Positions 9,801 through 47,330 of a stretch of DNA of 64,000 nucleotides are shown piece after piece (position 1 is the stretch's first letter; each line of letters opens with the position of its first letter). Location of the stretch: positions 62,001 through 126,000 of the forward strand of contig DF237065.1 in NCBI GenBank assembly GCA_000708835.1. The letters run 5' to 3'. Made by a program: the position numbers and the translations under genes. The DNA is from Klebsormidium nitens. Its lineage: Eukaryota > Plantae > Klebsormidiophyceae. The notes under the pieces were generated by a model, which was not told where the DNA came from, did no database searches, and was given only the letters and a program-made list of their open reading frames with translations.

Positions 9801-12800
9801 GGCCGGAGCCCGTGAGCACCCACTTGGTGCCAGGCGCGCCCGCCCACTTCATGCTTGCCGGGGTTGCTTGCACGGATGGGGCAGTCTTCGCACGCTTTGG
9901 ACCTCTGCAAGGAAGAACCAAGAGCTTGAGTCCCTGATTCGATTGAAGGAAAAGAGTATTCGAGTCCTCGCGTGCAATGTGGAGCAGAGAACCTGAATCC
10001 CTGAAGTGAATTGTTGCAGCATAGGCAATGAAAGTCACTTCTCCTGTGAAAAAAGTAAAGACGGTCATTGTTAAAAAGCGCCTTCTGACTGTGACCGGTA
10101 GATCTGTGCATTCGTTGCAAACCGGTCTGCTTGGGTGCGCCAGCTTGTGAAGACCCGCTTGGGCAATCGTTTGACGGTTTGAACCGCTGCTGCATGTTAC
10201 AAGATCTTACAAAGCGTAGACTTTCAACCGCGTAGGACTGCTTTATCATCCGAAAGGGCAGACACGCGAAAATAAAGTCAAAACAACGGAAATTTTCGGA
10301 AGGGAAATGAAGGGAATGCGATTCGTACCGTGCAGTCTCGGCGGCCTTCCGCTTCTTCGCCCCGCCCTTGTCCTTGCCGTTCGCGGGCGCTTCTTCCTGA
10401 TCTGAACCGTCGAATTCGTCGATCTCCATCTCAAACGGCAGCTTCTCCGAGGAGTGATCGGGGCACAGCATGACGTACGACTCCTGCGGATCGGAGGCGA
10501 CAGCTTGTCAGTACAAAATCGAAGCGGGAGCTTATGGACTTCGTGTTTGTTCTTGTTTTGGTCTGCAAATGTGGTTCGCCCGAGCGCAGAAGACATTCTG
10601 CGGCCTGACTGTGGCAACAGAGAGAATAACAGAACTTGCAACGAGAGCATCGGGTGGAGGCGATCCGGGTAAGACAGCAGGCCCCACAACACTTCCCGCG
10701 TTCAGGAATCCCCTATGGGCTTCGTTCCTTTACGGGCAACCCAGATTCTATGCAGAAATAGGTTCGTAGGGCCTTTAGAATTGTGTCTTCGAAAGGTGTG
10801 GGCGGAGGCGAGGGCGCGTACCGCCCCATTTCAAAAGCAGCCGGGAGAGGCCTTCCACCCTTGTTGCAAAGTCATTGAAAACGCGGCGTGGAAGGGTAAG
10901 GCCGATCGCTTTGAACGCTTCAATTTCACCGTTTTGTCTTGTTGGATCGACTCATTTTATTGCTAACCTCCTTCATGGCTTCACCAAGACCATTCTAAGT
11001 TTCCGTCACCTCGTACCAGCTCGTGGGTTCAATGTTTTTTTGAAGTCCCCCTCACCTCGTCAAAGCGGCAGCCCTCAAGCTGCCGGCTGCATGCGTAGTG
11101 GTACGTGTGGCGGCAGCGGGGCAGGAAGCACCCGAGCGCGGCACCGCGGCGGCTGCACACGCTGCACTTGAGCTGGCGGGAGCGGGCCAGCTCAGAGTCC
11201 AGGTTTGCCAGCTCCTCGCCCTCGAAGAACACGTTGGGCGCCCTAGGGTAGGAGTAAAGAAGCACCTCAAAAAGAAGCGGAAAAGTTGGAAGCCATGGAT
11301 ATCATGTGCATTACTTTCAACGTACGCTCCCTGCTTTGGTGCGAGACAATGAAGTTTTCAGCTCTGAAGCGCCAAACGAACACGGTTGATAGGCGGATAG
11401 CTTTGGGTGAAATGACCACATTGGGAACATAAAACGAGCGGTGGCTTTTCTCCTGATCTTAGCAGATGAGTCTGCTTTGAAGATCGCAAAGTCGATTGAC
11501 ACAACCGTTCCATTGCCTAAGCTTGTCCCGAAGGTGAGGATACGTGCTTTTGAATTAGAAATAGAGTCGTGATGACAGGAATCACAAGTCAAGGACCACA
11601 CCATCACTCCTCAAACTGCGACAACGACCTTCCTCCTATCGGATGAGCAGTCTCACCACTGTGCGCAGAGCTCGTGCACCACCACGCTCGCCAGCTGCAC
11701 CCTCTTGCGTTTCCCCCCACTCTCGTTGTCCGCTCCCCTCTCCTCAAAGCCTTCCGCCGCCAGGAGCCCAATTTGCGCCGCCCCTTTCCTCACCAGCTTT
11801 CCCGCAACGCTGGAGTCATCACCTAGCCCACAGAATCCGCACACGGGCTTCTCGCAAAACACGGGGGGCCCTCCTGAGTTGGGGGGGCGGGAAGTCGAGG
11901 GACACAGGCCAGTGTCACCAGGGGTTTTGGCGGGCACGCTCGGCGTCTTTCCGCCCTCTCCTGCGGGCTTCTTGCTAACATGAGGCGTGGTGCTCGGGGC
12001 CGCGGCTGCACTGACAGCTGTTGGCTCGGCGCTGACACCTGTTGCCTTGCCGGCGGCCGCCGGGCCTGCGACGATCCCCCTCTTCCTCTTGCCCGCCGCG
12101 GCGGCCCTCTGCTTCGGCTTGTGCTCGCTTGCTGACGTCACTTTCCCCTCCTCTGCTGACGTCACCTTTCCCTCACCCTCTGCCGCGAGTCGTGCGACAT
12201 GGCTGGCTGCCCCAGACGCTGTTTTTGTCAACCCAACCGCCGCAGCGACAGACGCCCGAATCTCGGCTTTGAGCTTTCCCTTTTCCGACACGGCCGCTTC
12301 CTCCCCCTTCGGTTCCACAGCGTTCCGCTTTGGCTCCTTGGCCCCCTGCTTGCTCCCTCCCTTCTTCCCTTTCCCGCCCTTCTTCTGTACGCCCTTGGCC
12401 TCACCCTTTGTGGACGGTGAGGGGGGGAGTGACGCCTCTTGAACCCCAAGCCCATCCTCTTGAAGGAACGCGTCAAACGGAGTATCGTCCTCGCAGCTGT
12501 AGAACTCCTCCCTTGCCACCTTCTCCCCATCTTCTTTTCCCGCACCTTTCCCCCTTGCTTTCCGACCTTTGTTTGCCGCTTTGGCCCCTTTCTCGGTGCC
12601 CACAATCTCCCTTGACACCAATTCCCCCGGCGAGGCAGCGCCTTCTTTCAACCTCATCGCGCCCTTCTTCCCGCTGCTGACCAGGTCGCTGAAGCTCATC
12701 GGGGGGGAGGCTTGCGTGGGCCGCAGCTGCGTACCTCCCTCGGGGTCCTGAGTCCCGACTTGCCCCCCCATCCAGAAGAACGGCTGGAAGCCGCTCCCTC

Positions 12801-39115: not shown

Positions 39116-40120
39116 GTCGTGCCCAGGAGGAGTTGTGGTTGCTCAGAACAGTATCTGTAACTGAGCGGTTGTAAATTACGTCGGTTAGGGTCAGCTAAGT
39201 GTCCTTGTGGGTGTCGGTCACGTCTACCGCGCTGGTTTCGAGAGAGAAGCCTCGCAGTTGAAGACTGACGTCAGAACTGATCAGCGGTCGGTCTCACTTA
39301 TTGCAAGGGGCTTGTCTAGTATGTACATTACCTTAAATGAACACTCGAGAAGATGTTTGTCAGGCTAAAAAATAGCGTCCTCCTACACCCTCAAGCACCG
39401 ACTTTACAGTCTCGATGCAAGATGCAACCCTGCCCTATCACGTCCTCTGATTCAGAGAATGCACGTACCTATGTGCGTTTTCTTACCAATCTGGACTATG
39501 CATATCCAATTAGCTCAAATACATGCATGCGCTCACCAAATATACTCATTCTTGTGCCGCTAATGCAACGTGACCAGGACATATTCTAGATACACGCACC
39601 ATGTTTTCAATTAACACACGGAACAGCTTGTTGACGCACGTTTTGTGCAGCTATCGCGGTGATGTGCCAGCTTTGAATACAGAGACTCACTGACATATCA
39701 TGCGCACAAGCTTAGTATAGGTATAGGTGCTTATAAGGATCGATCGAGTGCAATGATCTGCCACATGTGGCATGATTGTCGTTTACCGTACCTATACTGT
39801 CCACACATGACGTACATGATTGACTAAGTGCATGCGCTGAAGGTGTCGGATTGAAGAGCATTATATAGAGCGTGCGTGCTACGTGACCACGACGGAATTT
39901 GTTGCTCAGCTTGCGTCATTCGACTCCAGAGCTCGTGAAATCTAGCGATCAAAAGCCTTTCTGAAGCAATTTTATATAACCGATTTGTGATGCGTTGACT
40001 TGCTAACAGGGGTACCATTCAATCTACACTATTATAAACGTTGATGTAAGACGTCACGGATCCAAGTCTACCGTCAACATGCTGACCGCAACGTAAGCGC
40101 ATACCCAGGTGGCCCTTCTT

Positions 40121-43100
40121 CTACTCACGTAAATTGCTGTCCGACCGGGCTTCGTACGCTTGCGCGGTCCGTCGCCTGGTCAGCTCGGGGCAGGCCTCTC
40201 CCAGGGCTCCCGCTGACGTCACCATAAGCTGGAGAGCACACTCTGACGCCCCCCGAGCGGTCAGCGACATGCCCAGCTCGAAGACACGTGTCCACCCGTG
40301 GCCGCGAGCGCGCACAGCGCCAATTCCCTGAAGCCCACTGGCAGGACCTCTGCCGCCGTTGCGTCCGAACCGTCGCTGACGTCAGGGAGAGCGCCCGCGA
40401 GGCTCGAGCAAGTAGGCCGCCTTGGCGAGACCGCCGGAGATGCCACGTGGCGCATCCGGACAAAATTCCAAATTGTCTGACGGGGTTCCCCTAGTGTCCT
40501 TATCTTCCCCAATGCTCGGGCGACTGGGTGCCCCGTTCGGAGAAGAAGGGCTTGCGCTACCGCTGCTGACGTCACTTGCGCTTTCTGCTGCCGTTTCCTC
40601 CAGGATTCCGAAACAGCGCACGCTGTTGCGGAGCTTTGTGACGGCCCCCGCCCGCAAAGCATGCTGGCCCGCCCTGCGCCGCCGCCGGACGTGTGAATGC
40701 CCACCAGCCCCGGGTTTTCACACCTGCTCCTGGAGGATCCTCTCCTGGCACGGGCGTCGCCGCCGCCGACTTGCTGACGTCACCCTTTGTTTTCTTGGTT
40801 TCGCGCCGGTGGACGCGCTCGGCGGCCGCGGGATTGTGAAGTTCGACTCCGGCCGCTTGACCTCGTTCTAGGGGCTGGCTTTCCCGCTTCCAGGAGCCGG
40901 GGTTTGCGCGGGTTTCATGTCGGGTTGCGCTGATTCCAGCGCGATGTTCAGCCGCTCGATCCAGGGCCCGTCGCGCGCGAACCACTCGCGCATCTTTCGA
41001 ACGTCGCGGCTCCAAGCGGCCGCGAAAGTACGTATTTCTGGAGTGTTACTGCAGAGGCGATCCGACTCAATTCCAGCGCCGCCTGTTCTGGGCTCAGGGC
41101 CTCCTGTAGAACGGGGTCCTCAGCGGTCTGCACCGTGGACCCGCTCCGACTCTCGCTCCTTTTCCCGTCATCCTTAGCCGACGCTTTCTTGGTCAGCTTC
41201 TTTGCGCCCCCTCCTTTCCCTTTTGCCTGGAATTATCCTCCTGCACTTTTCTTTCCCGCTCAACATAACCCGGCCGCTTGTCCCAGGCCCTCACGATTCT
41301 CTTCCAACTCGCCGCCCCACTCGCCACCCGTTCGGTTTCCCCCCTCCCGCACTGCCCCTTCAACAACTCTCACGGCGAGCTCGAACGCGCGTGGATGGGC
41401 TGCGAGGTCGCCCTTCCGGGCGGCCCACGCCTTTTCACACCCGCCCGCAAGGTGTAAATGCACTCCCAGCATTTGAGCGGCAGCATCGGCGGGGGATCGG
41501 CGGAATCTTTCGACCGACAGCAAGAAAGTTATTCTCAAACGACGGCCAGTCTGGATCCGTCGGTAGTTTCCCTCTAGTAGTCGATTCTGCGCCTCTGCTT
41601 CTCGTCTCACCTTCTCCCCAGCCTCTTCTTTCCCCCTTCTTTCGACCCTATCGCCGCAGCAGAGCTTCCCGACCTGGGCGCATTTTCACTCTCTTTGGAG
41701 ACGCTCTTTCTGTGGAGTGTGAAGACCCCCAGGTCCATTATTCCAACAGCTTTCACCGCCTCGACCTCCGCTGTAACCGCCAGCCTTTCGAACAGCTGTG
41801 ACCTCAGCCCGGCCGCAACCTTCACAGCTCCTGACGTCAGCCCAGCCGTCTGATTGATCGTCGCCAACACACGTGGCAGCCGGCGAGCAGGGGCTGTATC
41901 GCCGGGCATTTTTCGGGTAGGTTCGCAGGGAGCGGGACCACCCGGTTGTAGAACCGGGTCACCGCTTTGTACACTAAAGGGGCGCATGTACACAGCGCCG
42001 CGGCCTGCGCCGCGATCAGCAGGCGGTGCGCTTGATTGTGGCGCTCGACTTGCGATGGAAGGAGCGAGTGCGGGGTTTGGGCGGGGTTTAGCGCGCGCAG
42101 CGGCCTGGGCGCGGCTTTGGACTCCATAAAAAGGACCTGGGTCGCGCAGGAAAAGAAGGTGACGTCAGTGGATTGGGCGACTGCTGCAAGCGGGACGGCT
42201 TCAGGAGGATAAAAGTTTAATGTATGTTTTTGATCTACAACACGACTCTCAATTTGAAGGAGGACTTAGGGTTGTTGGAGTTGATAAGCCTCAAACATGT
42301 TTCCACCTTTTCGAATAGAGGTGTAACCCACTGTGCACACGTCTAACTTTGCTCGCTGCTTCATTGACCGTGCGAAAGCTGGAGAGACGAAGTCAACTTT
42401 TCCTCAGTCCTGCCTCCCTTCTCTTTGTGTTTTCGAACACTTTGAAGTTTGGTGAGCAACATGCGCCTCCGCTTTCGTATGCTTTTCAAAAGACTGTTCT
42501 ACTGACTGTGATCCTTGAAACTTTTGACTGCCTCTTTGACCCCGGGGACCACATAGCTACCAATCCTCACCTGGACGAAGCTTCTGAGCAGCGTGTGGGG
42601 CGCCCCCCGAGTCCCGCGTCTCCGTCGCCGTGAGCTGGTCGCCGAAAAGTCGCTCCACCCCGTCTTCATCCACTGCTACCTTCTCCACCGAATGGGCGAC
42701 CACCGGCCGCGCCGCGGATAGCGCGTCTTTTGGGCACCCCACCCGGTGAGCGTCAGTGTCAGGTACGCTTGACACCGTAGTTTTGGCAGGGGTGACCGGG
42801 GGGTTGCTGGGCCCGACGGTGTCAGTGAGGGCGCCAGTCGCATCGTAGAAAGCGAGCGCGAAGATGTAGCGCTCGTTGGGCGTCAGGCCCGAGACGGTGA
42901 TGACATCAGAGAGGGGGGCGCACGTGCCCGCCTGCAGATGGAAAGTCCGGTAGTGAGTTGAAAGCTACCCGCAAACCTTCGAAAAGTGATGGAAGCTTTC
43001 TTGGTGGTGGCCACAGAAATCGGAAAGGTTCATAAGGCGTTAGTCAGGAGACATGGAGGTACGGCAGCGATGCAGCGAAACCAGAAGCTTTTGGCCGAGT

Positions 43101-46100
43101 AGTATAACCAGATAAAAGTAGAGTTTCGAGCGGTGAAGCGGAAATCTATCATTCTCAACTTCTAGGGACAATCAACTTACGCACAGGCTACGTCTACTCT
43201 GCGTCGGATTTGGTTTGCCTTCAGGATAGGCAAATCTTAGCTCATACTACAAAGGAAAGATAAGGATCAGCACCTGTCCCGGGGGAAGTCTGTGTTGTGC
43301 AGCGAGACCCCCACTCCGCTCCCCGCGACCTTCCCAAATACCGCGTGCGCGACCCGCTTTCCGTCCGGCGAGTCCCTTCCGCCGGAGCTCTTTCCGCTCT
43401 CTGATCGGGCAGGAAAAGCAGCAGCGGGCCGAATGGTTACCGACACACTGGTCCTCGTCAAGATGAGGGGGCCCGGAACGCCTCTACTAAACTGGTCCCT
43501 TCGCCGGCTAAGGCCAGAGCGCGCGCGCTTTCCTTCAGGGCGCGCGCGTTTTATGAGCTCCGCCTGCGCCTGCTGCAGGAAGAGCGCGCGGTCGGCTTGA
43601 GACGGGCGCGTCACGGCGATCTGTGTGAGCGCGCGCGCGCGCTGGTAGGGGTTGGCGTTGCACTCTCCGCGAAGCTCCTTTTCGACCTGCGGATGTGGAG
43701 TGGGGAGGTTGAATTCTGGGGTACGAAGTTCCAAAAGTTCTGAAAAGTTCTGAAAATTTTAGAAGGAAAAACGTAAGTTCGCCCGAGAGAGACGGCGAGG
43801 TTGTTTGCTGAAAAAACCAACGATCTAAGCATCCAGCTCGTACCTGCAGACAGTGAATTACATCCTAATGTATGCTTGACCTGCCGCTTGAACAGGATTA
43901 CTGCAAAGACTAGGAAGGAGGCAAACTTTCAACAGAACTTTCAGCGGCAAGCAGACCCCGAGAAATGGCGTCACAACAGCTGGTTCTCTTCAACAAGCAG
44001 AGCTCGTGAGATACCCTGACTGGTACGTGAACACAAAGTACAAGATCAACAGATCCTCAACGGAAGACTTCGGAGAAACGGGTGTTCTGGAGCCGAGTTG
44101 ACGGAAGACTTCGGGGAAACTGGTGCCAAATGATTTATTCAGCCCACGCTGCACAGTTAAGTCTGCTTCCACCGAAGCTCGAATCTCTTTCGGTCTCCGA
44201 CCCCTATGCACAACGCCAAACTGCAAATCAAACCGCGAAAAGCGAGGCAATGAGGAGCAAAGCGCAAGAGAACCCAAAAGCTATTGCAGGCAAAGCAAAA
44301 CGAAATTGCGGAGAACAAGGGAAAAAATTTCGTGGCATAGCCCACCTTTCCGGAAAGCCGCGGCGGCCGGCCGACGCGTGTCAGCCTGTCCTGCGCCTCC
44401 TTCTTCCCCTTGAGCGTCATCGCACCAAAGATGCTCGACTGCTGCTCGCGCTTGCGCAGCGTGCTCTCCTCGCGGCTCAGCCGCGCAGCCGCCTCCGCGG
44501 CCTCCGCGTGCCCGCCCAGCCGCTGCAGAATATACCTGTCGGTTATTTCTGATTCGATGGCTCGTCAACTCCAACCAAGCCAGTCCCGTTGTCTTGATTC
44601 GGGTTCTTTCAATCCGCCACAGAAGAATGAAACTTCGTTTCGGAGAATCATCTGTCTAGCTTTAGTTCACACTCCACTGCTGGCCGACAATCTGACCGTC
44701 CAGTCATGCCACTGACGGGAATTTGGCTAAAGGGTTTCTCTTATGAGGATAAGCGGCTACATTTTGCGCCGAAGCGTCCGATGAATCTTGTACAATGACC
44801 ATTTGCTGGACACCGACCTTCCGAGGAGTTGTAAGCAGTGCTCAATTGAGCCCCACGAGAAGATAAGACTTGTTTAATACCGACAGTGACAAGAACCGAC
44901 CGGAGTCCGCCAGGGGATGCTAGCTGAGCTCTCAAACTTACAAGCCGCAGTTGGCAGTACGTCATCAGGAGGTCCACGTGGCAGCTCCTCAGCACCTTCT
45001 GCGCCTCGTCGCCCAGGCCGCCCTCCCGCGCCTCCGCCCAACTCGGGTCGCTGACGTCATCGTGACGCGCACTTCTTGCTTGCGGTTATGACAGCAACGC
45101 AGGTACTCATCACCGGTGGGCAGCTCCTGTGCCGCTTGATCTGAAATGATCTGCAAGCGCAAAATAAAGGGGCTTATTCCTCATAAATTCCAGGCCGAGT
45201 ATCACAACCTATTCCGAGCGCAGGGTCTCCCAACATTGGGCAGCTCATGCGGCGCTCCATCTCTTAGACTCTGCAAGGTCCAAGCAAGAGGGCTTCGTTC
45301 TCATTCTTCCACAACTACAAGGATTAAGTATGAGTCCGTGATGTCGGGTCTAATCATTTACTTCAGAAAAGCAGCCTGTCATCCGGAGATACTCATCAAG
45401 TGGGCAGCTCCTACGCCACTTACTCTTCAAACAATATGCGGATCAACAACAGAACAATCAGCCTAAGGATGCTTGGATGCCTCTTCGGTGGTTCGCACAT
45501 GCTGCAACCGTCCTTCTCAGAGCCTTTACTGCTGACTCATCAAGGTACTCTTCAGCTTTGGGCAGCGGAGATTCTCAAAAGCTCTCCTCATGGAGCCCAG
45601 TTGCCTCTTCGAGCTTGCACAAACAATGGTCTCCCCAATGTCCCCACATGTTGCCACAAACTTAATGCAGGTTTCGACTTCTCCCAGTTCGAGGCTTACC
45701 ATAGAAGCCCCATACCTCAACGCTTGCTCCAAGATGTCTCGGAAGTCTCTCCCCAACATGCCTCCCGCTACCGCAGCTATTGATTCTTGCTCGGCAGACG
45801 ACAGGTGCTGAGCATTATCGGCTGATCATCGTGCGGCACGTGTGACACTTGAGACCATGCGGGTCTGCATCATCTGAAGGAAGGCCCAAAGAGTGGTATC
45901 AGGATCGATATATCAAGGTGCAATTTGTCAGCGAAAGAGCCTGGGAAGGCGATTACTTCTAGCGTGGAAAGAGCTAAACCGTGCGAATGTGCTCTCCGTC
46001 AGCTACAACAACTTGCATGGAATCACCGGCCCTCCAAGGGAGACAATTTGCACCAACCCTTATATACCGAATACATTTATAAGCCATGCGAACTATCTAC

Positions 46101-47330
46101 TATCCGTCAGCTATGACATTCTACCAAGGATGGCGGCCCTGCAGGCCAGACAGGTTGCACCGACCCTTCTTTACAGAAGAAATCTCAGGGCCGTGCAATG
46201 AGGCTGTTTTTTGCCGTAAGCTATAACATTCTACCGGGAATGGCCGGCCCTGCAGGCAGAAAACTGGCACCAACCCTTCCGTGCAATTTGTCTAGCAGGG
46301 TCGCACAGCGGCTGCCTTCTCACCTGACCGTGTCTTCAGTTGCTCCTTGCAGTCACGGCGCCCCTCACGGGGGCGGGGGCTCCTGCTCGAGAGTTCATCT
46401 CTGCGGACGCCCTGCCCTACTCGAGGTGGCCCGCAGCCGACAAAGCGACGGCTCGCTGAAAGCCCTCGAGCAGGGCCGACTTTGGGACGTCAGCCAGCGC
46501 ATGGAGGCGCTCGTGGCAGCCCCGAAGGCCCCACGTCAGGCAGCCTCCGTCCAGAAAGGGCCGGCCGACCCGCATGCCTCCCTCGCCAGCCCACCCACGC
46601 TCCCCGCGTCACTTTGCCAGACGCGCCCCCCCTCACGGCCGCCTTCAGAAGCGCGCTCCTGACCCAACTTTGGATTGTCGGTGAGGGAGACACCGTCTGC
46701 GCTCGAGACACGGGGGGGCGCTGAGCGGGTCCTCTTGCCTTTCCCATGGTCGTCTTTGAGGCCTGCATGAGAAGAGCGTGGAACCTCAGTTGGAGGAGAA
46801 GGAGGGCCATGCCTATGGGGAACTGGGAACACTGTGATCAATGGCATGTACCAGAAATCGAGGGCTTCACTTCTAAACAGAACAGACCTTTCTTCGATAC
46901 ACTGCAAGGAATACTTGCCCTACCCGTGCATATGCATTGTTAATGGCAGGTGTACCGAGAATCAGGAGCTTTACTTCAAGAAGAACAGACCTTCCTTTGG
47001 TACAAGGGAGGTTTGCAGCATCACCTGGAGTGCGATGCAGAAACCTTCATCCTCGTCACAATCTGCATCGATGGGGGCCCATGGATCTCTTGCTGCGGGA
47101 TCGACCTGGACAGAGGACACCAGATACTCAACACCTCAGGAGAGCCCTAGCGACACCCCACCTTGGTGCTGCGCTAACGCAGTCTTTGCGGATGCTCGGG
47201 TCCGTGCTGCGACTTGCTACCCCGTTCATTCCAATCTTCGCACAGTACATCATTGGTTGCGCTGCGCTTTGAGCTCCACGGGCAGCCAACAAGCTGGTAA
47301 TCAGTGCAGAGATTGAGCGCAACCACCTGG
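40121..47330 (-). pseudogene. CFAP54: CFAP54 (FAP54, central-pair C1d projection) pseudogene fragment
   Basis: Segments align from memory to the CFAP54 N-terminal half: CHVDLLMTYCQLRL; EKELRGECNANPYQRARAL; VPGPLILTRTSVSVTIRP..AVFGKVAGSGVGVSLHNTDFP; ITVSGLTPNERYIFALAFYDATG (cf. VPPPPILLSRTHCSVTLKP and VKGLETNEKYVFAVAAY). In-frame stops at 46536-38 and 46417-19; frameshifts near 43283, 42785/42751, 41875, 41045 and 40300. Confidence 0.82.
45985..46300. repeat. Three degenerate ~110-120-bp tandem units in a CFAP54 intron
   Basis: GCTA(C/T)(A/G)ACA..GG..GGCCCT(G/C)CA..GCACC(A/G)ACCCTT recurs at ~46000, 46110 and 46220. Confidence 0.75.

Follow-up and report, generated by a model that had tools for sequence, protein, structure and literature searches.

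CFAP54/FAP54 serves as a scaffold in the C1d projection of the ciliary central pair, and unitary pseudogenes of ciliary genes occur in lineages whose cilia have been lost. Structures of FAP54/CFAP54 have been determined for Chlamydomonas (PDB 7N6G/7SQC) and for mammals (9IJJ). In the present study, a 64,000-nt stretch of the Klebsormidium nitens genome (contig DF237065.1; hereafter the window) was analysed, in which a first-pass annotation had recognised a decaying CFAP54 gene and had taken it for a possible sign that flagella or zoospores were being, or had recently been, lost. According to our analysis, the locus is probably a non-processed, truncated and transcribed pseudogene copy of CFAP54/FAP54, with a conserved second copy elsewhere. 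Like the duplicated, non-processed and transcribed pseudogenes of plants and animals, the window copy keeps its introns and has breakpoints inside exons, carries disabling indels and stop codons, yields a spliced transcript with a foreign 5′-end and has a putative parental copy that appears to be under purifying selection. It differs from them in nothing essential, although the parent is not placed in the assembly and neither a flanking transposon nor terminal inverted or direct repeats, which would be a sign of transposon capture, were found around the fragment.

The middle third of CFAP54/FAP54 has its orthologous counterpart on the minus strand of the window, from 45079 to 40181. An exon-by-exon match with 64-86% nucleotide identity was obtained with the loci of two relatives, L001 (Logan SRR14092358) and L010 (a JGI metagenome contig), and the tblastn comparison of the window with the relatives' exons gave E values between 1e-38 and 1e-47. 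The big exon forms a single open reading frame of 765-767 aa in three relatives, and its alignment with the window contained 322 identities over 615 aligned codons. This exon matched Chlamydomonas FAP54 (7n6g_1O, residues 1141-1625) with an E value of 3.4e-28; the exon following it in the relatives matched mammalian CFAP54 weakly (E=0.021), and their upstream exons matched the Pfam domain CFAP54_N (PF14858) with 37.2 bits at a cut-off of 27. The CFAP54 identity proposed in the first-pass annotation was thus confirmed by the exon-wise match to L001 and L010, whose big exon matches FAP54. As judged from these similarities, the family assignment of the window is a transitive one, made via the relatives' exons; no direct match of the window's own pieces to FAP54 or CFAP54_N was observed in the PDB phmmer and Pfam searches. 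A Pfam scan of 20 raw ORF pieces from the window gave nothing, neither four window pieces nor P0004 retrieved FAP54 from the PDB in phmmer searches, and the ESM Atlas returned nothing for a window piece and generic fn3 clusters alone for P0004. Within the window, nothing was found with Rfam and no arrays were reported by Tandem Repeats Finder. In the databases, the locus is annotated as GAQ82581.1 / KFL_001160140, a 552-aa hypothetical protein of K. nitens. Compared with CFAP54/FAP54 itself, the window copy shares the segment orthologous to the relatives' FAP54-aligning region and an upstream fibronectin-III-like part; unlike CFAP54/FAP54, it has no CFAP54_N domain and no C-terminal part at all, its frame is broken at least 10 times, and a protein of ~3,000 residues is not encodable.

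The part of the gene retained in the window measures ~4.9 kb and consists of part of one exon, four complete introns and most of a very large exon. Its 5′ breakpoint was placed at ~45079 within exon 3 and its 3′ breakpoint at 40181 within exon 7, both inside ancestral exons. Upstream of 45079, no resemblance was seen to the relatives' N-terminal exons, which carry PF14858, and this domain had no match among the 20 pieces. Downstream, the last ~90 codons of the big exon and everything beyond are missing, and no match to the relatives' downstream exons (572-609 aa and 411-417 aa) was present in the window. The absence of the N-terminal domain and of the C-terminal half, as claimed at first pass, therefore holds, there being no window match to the corresponding exons of the relatives. 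The 22 kb of L010 are almost entirely CFAP54, and the sole neighbour gene there had no match in the window. A mid-gene fragment of this kind, set between unrelated genes, would have arisen from a partial segmental duplication.

The structure of the transcript (Table 1) was derived from RNA runs of three different studies (X4, X5 and X11), together with one DNA run of the same organism (X1). In each of the three RNA runs a single contig carried all six joints; these GT-AG joints were absent from X1. The exon chain adds up to exactly the length of the X4 contig, 4,284 nt. The four inherited introns fall where the matches to the relatives' exons are interrupted, and all four retain GT-AG. The splice sites had been called intact at first pass, and this is true of the six RNA-supported introns. 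A processed (retrotransposed) pseudogene was ruled out, as the six introns are present in the DNA and removed from the RNA. When exon 1 was compared with the relatives' ORFs, non-colinear noise matches only were obtained. The homologous part of exon 3 corresponds to the last 48 codons of a relative's exon of at least 254 codons. Transcripts of the fragment begin with a new 5′-end made up of the two unrelated exons, and six canonical GT-AG introns are removed from them.

Table 1. Features of the CFAP54-related locus (window coordinates)
Feature	Position	Strand	Remarks
Whole transcribed unit	39887..47023	-	7-exon, 4,284-nt spliced RNA; outer ends inferred from contigs extending beyond the aligned stretch
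Exon 1	46324..47023	-	Outer end ~47023; unrelated to CFAP54; contains the codons 46536-38 and 46417-19; no Pfam match
Exon 2	45700..45873	-	Unrelated to CFAP54; contains the ATG of the annotated model GAQ82581.1
Exon 3	44942..45150	-	CFAP54 homology starts at ~45079; 81% aa identity over 45064-44936
Exon 4	44346..44522	-	CFAP54-homologous, 63% aa identity; no lesion seen
Exon 5	43274..43686	-	CFAP54-homologous; frame lesions present
Exon 6	42571..42931	-	Fibronectin-III-like part; frame changes present
Exon 7	39887..42136	-	CFAP54-homologous from 42139 to 40181, where it matches one exon of 765-767 codons in the relatives
Best-documented frameshift	41870	-	1-nt deletion, GCH / VLATINQ; second copy has an extra G and a single frame
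Robust frameshifts	~41297, ~41202, 41020, 40799, 40675	-	Persist at a frameshift penalty of -30 with L001 as well as with L010
In-frame stop	40870	-	Likewise persists with either relative (L001, L010) at penalty -30
Two degenerate 27-nt 'echo' copies	45236-45262, 45400-45426	+	In intron 2; source 45116-45142, 9-35 nt inside the 5′-end of exon 3

With the default penalty, a frameshift-aware alignment of exon 7 gave 11 frameshifts and 2 stops; a frameshift penalty of -30 still left no fewer than 7 frameshifts together with 3 stops. Additional frameshifts were present in the upstream exons. Exon 5 contains a +1/+2 pair (~43550/43485), which is apparently compensated, and a +1 shift in the C5 run 43281-43285, where FPRDR is read in the window and FPGTG in the relatives; exon 6 contains frame changes at ~42789/42751 and ~42600, and the mRNA frame entering it from exons 3-5 stops at 42883. 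The three frameshifts named in the first-pass annotation were recovered by this alignment at 41870, 41020 and ~40324. Its two nonsense codons have to be withdrawn as CFAP54 lesions, because both are located in exon 1, which has no detectable CFAP54 similarity. The contigs of the window copy from the RNA runs (X4, X5, X11) and from the DNA run showed zero mismatches and zero gaps against the window, and the table of inserted and deleted letters between them was empty, so that, as the first-pass annotation had supposed, the lesions are real and not assembly noise. With at least 10 frameshifting indels and several stop codons, which the fragment has gathered, no ORF longer than 220 codons is left in the 4.3-kb RNA (220 codons being the longest ATG-started ORF of the RNA-supported exon chain), and hence no CFAP54 protein.

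A second copy of CFAP54 was detected in the reads, known from short contigs over parts of exons 4-7 without a position in the assembly. Its depth in the DNA run was 7-26 compared with 6-29 for the window copy, that is ~1:1. In X5, the sole RNA run of the three in which the second copy was found, the depth was 3-4 compared with 25-66, contig depth being a poor measure of expression. The second copy was ~92% identical to the window over the 478 rebuilt exon nucleotides, and two further RNA contigs of it were 86-87% identical. It was rebuilt as GCHVVLATVNQT, which is read in a single frame across 41870, and the two second-copy contigs of X5 were each one base longer than the window, one across 41870 and the other across 41020. 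At 11 of the 11 amino-acid differences, the second copy has the residue of the relatives. When the changes were polarised with L001 and L010, the branch of the window received 18 of them (10 non-synonymous, 8 synonymous) and that of the second copy five, which were all synonymous (0 non-synonymous). By these counts, the second copy shows a signature of purifying selection in the pieces seen, and we infer that it is full length and resides in the same genome. In view of the 1:1 depth and of the contig total of ~99 Mb in X1, it is rather improbable that a second alga contaminated both of the independent data sets. The intact CFAP54 elsewhere, which the first-pass annotation had named as evidence that would turn the locus into a dead duplicate, was therefore encountered in part: a conserved copy in frame at 41870 is present, and it is represented by short pieces only. 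Presumably, it is this conserved copy that serves the zoospores.

Among 1.84 billion representative proteins, the only K. nitens match to the 163-aa exon-5 piece was GAQ82581.1. Since no other K. nitens protein matched this piece, the annotated proteome seems to lack the conserved CFAP54 of this species, at least as far as exon 5 is concerned. Word searches with a 142-aa ORF of the window, the 767-aa exon of the relatives and their 609-aa C-terminal exon brought up no K. nitens protein as a counterpart of the second copy, a blank that says little under the 0.55-1.75x length filter applied. Neither an exact 26-nt pattern of the second copy nor alignment A1, used for a pattern scan, gave a match in the JGI metagenome contigs.

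The window copy could alternatively be a unitary pseudogene, i.e., the sole CFAP54 of the lineage, which decays as motile zoospores or the C1d projection are lost; we regard this as unlikely. It resembles the unitary ciliary pseudogenes in being a ciliary gene with accumulated frameshifts, its lesions are numerous and real, the exon-5 piece matched no other annotated protein of the species, and a 2026 preprint in one place terms K. nitens non-flagellated. Unlike those pseudogenes, it is accompanied by a conserved second copy, in a species that keeps a large flagellar gene set; over the gene parts covered by the window, the description of a unitary pseudogene as a gene with no functional copy left does not apply. 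The second copy is transcribed and stands at equal depth in the DNA, its frame is unbroken at 41870 and its branch contrasts with that of the window (no non-synonymous and 5 synonymous changes, compared with 10 and 8), and the position of both breakpoints inside exons is that of a partial duplicate. In addition, Wang et al. 2020 (PMC7027972) reported that K. nitens has 240 of the 397 conserved flagellar proteins and all 12 of the IFTs scored, K. flaccidum is documented to form zoospores (PMC4736243), and biflagellate zoospores of K. nitens are stated in the same 2026 preprint. FAP54 is not listed in the text supplements of PMC7027972, and no mention of Klebsormidium together with CFAP54/FAP54, or of the locus identifiers, was found in a literature search. 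As a conserved second copy exists in the reads, the locus is best regarded as an ordinary dead duplicate and not as a sign of flagella loss; with this copy and the rich flagellar gene set, the proposed loss of flagella or zoospores in progress is not supported.

The finding matters mostly as a correction. GAQ82581.1 / KFL_001160140 represents an artefact model threaded through a pseudogene. Because the annotated proteome seems to lack the conserved CFAP54, flagellar gene inventories of K. nitens, a key streptophyte alga, could wrongly score CFAP54 as degenerate or absent. The decay of one ciliary gene in a draft assembly does not count as evidence that a trait was lost, unless the reads have been used to exclude paralogues.

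About as improbable as a unitary pseudogene is a fragment that is still functional, either through a short protein (from the 220-aa ORF or the 552-aa model) or through a regulatory long non-coding RNA, for instance one acting on the mRNA of the parental CFAP54. Three independent studies show its transcription and correct splicing, and in X5, the only RNA run with both copies, its k-mer depth is ~10 times that of the second copy, but expression is poorly gauged by contig depth, and the 552-aa model requires a mini-intron that was seen in no RNA contig. GT-AG is kept in all four inherited introns; however, 16 unchanged splice-site bases are expected by chance in ~4 of 10 cases at ~5% divergence (our own arithmetic). 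The frequent indels and the share of non-synonymous changes on its branch, about half, look like neutral decay.

Somewhat less probable again is that the RNA of the pseudogene is kept as a decoy or as a source of small RNAs, which would hold the flagellar gene down outside zoospore formation. Such a regulatory role is conceivable because of the similarity of the two copies over the ~3 kb of shared exon, where only ~8-14% of the compared exon positions differ, and because of the ~10-fold contig depth in X5. The reading as a dead transcribed duplicate was retained. That the gene is in fact intact, with the indels being homopolymer errors of a draft assembly, is very improbable: two of the inferred +1 shifts do fall in C runs (43281-43285 and ~42913-42918), but the majority of the shifts lie outside homopolymers, and the contigs of this copy in one DNA run and three RNA runs, which come from different studies, show neither mismatch nor gap over the lesions they cover. 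Finally, one contig of the second copy ends in a loose stretch of 30 nt, which matches the intron of the window at 18 of the 30 positions by our own count.

A search of 1.84 billion representative proteins with the exon-5 piece of the locus (43270-43758, minus strand) returned four matches only, and the best of these (P0001) was the 552-aa GAQ82581.1, "hypothetical protein KFL_001160140" of Klebsormidium nitens, which is the annotated model of the very locus in the window. Pfam gave no match for 20 raw ORF pieces of the window, PDB none for four window pieces and an Atlas look-up none for one piece; the locus was thus not nameable from its own sequence alone. The second match (P0002) came from the Logan assemblies SRR14092358-60, and a 13-kb contig from them (L001) aligned with the window's minus-strand exons one after another between 45001 and 40261, with 71-86% nucleotide identity. 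A JGI metagenome contig (L010) likewise matched exon by exon from 45074 to 40261 (64-83% identity), and judging by the level of identity these relatives are presumably other klebsormidiophytes. The counterpart of window 42139-40181 was a single open exon of 765-767 codons in three relatives, and this exon matched Chlamydomonas FAP54 (PDB 7n6g chain 1O, residues 1141-1625 of 3225) with E=3.4e-28; the next exon showed a weak match to mammalian CFAP54 (9ijj_H, E=0.021), and Pfam CFAP54_N was matched by upstream exons of L010, in one case with 37.2 bits (cut-off 27). Hence the gene in the relatives is a true CFAP54, and its middle part is orthologous to the window segment.

The similarity to the relatives was limited to 45079-40181. 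No likeness to their N-terminal exons was observed upstream of 45079, even at E<=5, and their downstream exons (572-609 aa and 411-417 aa) had no counterpart anywhere in the 64-kb window. The 5' breakpoint fell within an exon that spans at least 254 codons in L010; only the last 48 remain in the window. The 3' breakpoint lay about 90 codons short of the end of the big exon.

Lesions were called by aligning the exon proteins of the relatives with the window in a frameshift-aware dynamic programme; in poorly conserved stretches the resulting counts are estimates. With a moderate penalty, exon 7 contained 11 frameshifts and two in-frame stops (322 identities over 615 aligned codons), and when the penalty was made very heavy (frameshift -30, stop -25), seven frameshifts and three stops remained, against L001 and L010 alike. 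Further exon-7 events, whose precise form varied with the penalty, were placed within 41724-41517 and 40407-40324. All three frameshifts named in the first-pass annotation were within the recovered set; its two nonsense codons, at 46536 and 46417, both fall in exon 1, a part of the transcript without relation to CFAP54, and so are not lesions of that gene.

Lesions of the window copy and introns of its transcript (intron borders after the tool's stated cut offsets)
Feature	Position	Strand	Detail
Exon 7, robust frameshift	41870	minus	-1
Exon 7, robust frameshift	~41297	minus	+1
Exon 7, robust frameshift	~41202	minus	
Exon 7, robust frameshift	41020	minus	-1
Exon 7, robust frameshift	40799	minus	-1
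Exon 7, robust frameshift	40675	minus	-2
Exon 7, robust stop	40870	minus	
Exon 5, shift pair	~43550/43485	minus	apparently compensated
Exon 5, shift	43281-85	minus	+1 in C5 run
Exon 6, shifts	~42789/42751	minus	
Exon 6, shift	~42600	minus	+1
Intron 1	46323-45874	minus	GT..AG
Intron 2	45699-45151	minus	GT..AG
Intron 3	44941-44523	minus	GT..AG
Intron 4	44345-43687	minus	GT..AG
Intron 5	43273-42932	minus	GT..AG
Intron 6	42570-42137	minus	GT..AG

Window 40601-46600 was compared with contigs from four public sequencing runs of this organism. X4, X5 and X11, from three studies, each yielded one contig joining seven exons over six introns; these six exon joints, none of which was found in the DNA run X1, identify X4, X5 and X11 as RNA. 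The exon chain totals 4,284 nt, and the X4 contig has precisely this length. The RNA contigs of the transcript and the X1 contigs of the window copy agreed with the window without a single differing letter, gap or indel, so the frameshifts are neither assembly errors nor edited away, and the lesions in the compared range are confirmed in independent data. The longest ATG-started ORF on the RNA-supported exon chain spanned only 220 codons (44965 to 42883), terminating in exon 6 shortly past the exon 5/6 junction; the joined chain served for this ORF scan only, and similarity searches were run with separate exons. GAQ82581.1 bypasses the stop at 42883 by a frame-switching mini-intron within exon 5 (43274-43686), and this mini-intron was absent from all RNA contigs; the 552-aa "hypothetical protein" is an artefact produced by annotating a pseudogene. 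X11 also contained an unrelated, more abundant contig (1,106 nt, depth 69) with a 32-nt GC-rich match to exon 7 (41998-42029, two mismatches), which is probably due to chance.

Degenerate repeats were seen around two introns. Exon 3 contains a 27-nt stretch (45116-45142, 9-35 nt from its 5' end) that recurs twice in degenerate form in the intron directly upstream (45236-45262 and 45400-45426; 78-81% identity, spacing 120 and 164 nt). Intron 1 holds three degenerate direct repeats (45987-46279; spacing 107-110 nt, units of at most 66 nt, 73-84% alike), too diverged to be reported by Tandem Repeats Finder.

Extra contigs, covering exon parts only and for the most part 86-95% similar to the window, revealed a second copy as short stretches that overlap the fragment in the window. 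In the DNA run X1 the depth of this copy was 7-26 versus 6-29 for the window copy, and in the RNA run X5 it was 3-4.5 versus 25-66. The loose ends of these contigs began at or near exon borders, and one 30-nt loose end shared 18 of 30 positions with the window intron by hand count, which suggests that the introns of the two copies are homologous but more diverged. When the second copy was rebuilt at 41870, the best-documented frameshift, from the listed substitutions and a 26-nt loose end, it carried one extra G and stayed in one frame across the site, reading ...PLLAGCHVVLATVNQT. Two X5 contigs of the second copy exceeded the window by one base each, one spanning 41870 and the other 41020; in the latter we infer that the extra base sits at the lesion itself.

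The two copies differed at 36 positions over about 478 nt, and the changes were polarised with L001 and L010, 13 of the 36 being ambiguous. The window branch received 18 changes (10 non-synonymous, eight synonymous) versus five, all synonymous, on the second-copy branch; by our own arithmetic, p is ~0.01 (two-sided binomial) for the 18:5 asymmetry and ~0.04 (one-sided) for the lack of non-synonymous changes on the second-copy branch. At 11 of 11 amino-acid differences the second copy agreed with one or both relatives, and the window copy with neither.

Both copies have lineage-specific residues in common that set them apart from the relatives; the second copy is therefore of the K. nitens lineage and not an L001-like contaminant. 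The 1:1 depth, together with ~99 Mb of X1 contigs, argues that both copies lie in the same genome. No exon-5 match besides GAQ82581.1 was found in the annotated K. nitens proteome within the 1.84-billion-protein search, and word searches and metagenome scans for the second copy were blank, which for technical reasons carries little weight; the true CFAP54 of K. nitens may lack an annotation or be absent from the assembly.

The simplest reading of the locus is a partial segmental duplication. A part of CFAP54 would have been copied with its introns, the duplicate would be driven by a foreign 5' end with splicing retained and would evolve without constraint, and the parental CFAP54 would still be under purifying selection. 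The first-pass annotation was largely right in seeing a broken CFAP54, given the homology through the relatives and the lesions matched by independent contigs. Its proposal of flagellum loss is unsupported; it had itself taken an intact copy elsewhere to mean a dead duplicate, and the conserved second copy fits this. K. nitens was reported to have 240 of 397 conserved Chlamydomonas flagellar proteins, more than Mesostigma or Chara, and all 12 scored IFTs (Wang et al., 2020; PMC7027972), the NIES-2285 genome has ciliary genes, and zoospores are documented for K. flaccidum (Elias et al., 2016; PMC4736243). These gene counts and zoospore records agree with a dead duplicate. The locus is an ordinary transcribed pseudogene, and its main value is the correction of the annotation.

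A distant CFAP54-like gene was also seen in an algal metagenome contig from ENA (L004, 33 kb); its protein, P0005, clusters at 90% identity with P0003, which is 41% identical to the window piece. Exons with Pfam matches to CCDC39, another axonemal gene, lie ~7 kb from this CFAP54-like gene (943-2908 and 10001-10504 are the stretches concerned), and the contig may represent a small ciliary gene neighbourhood.
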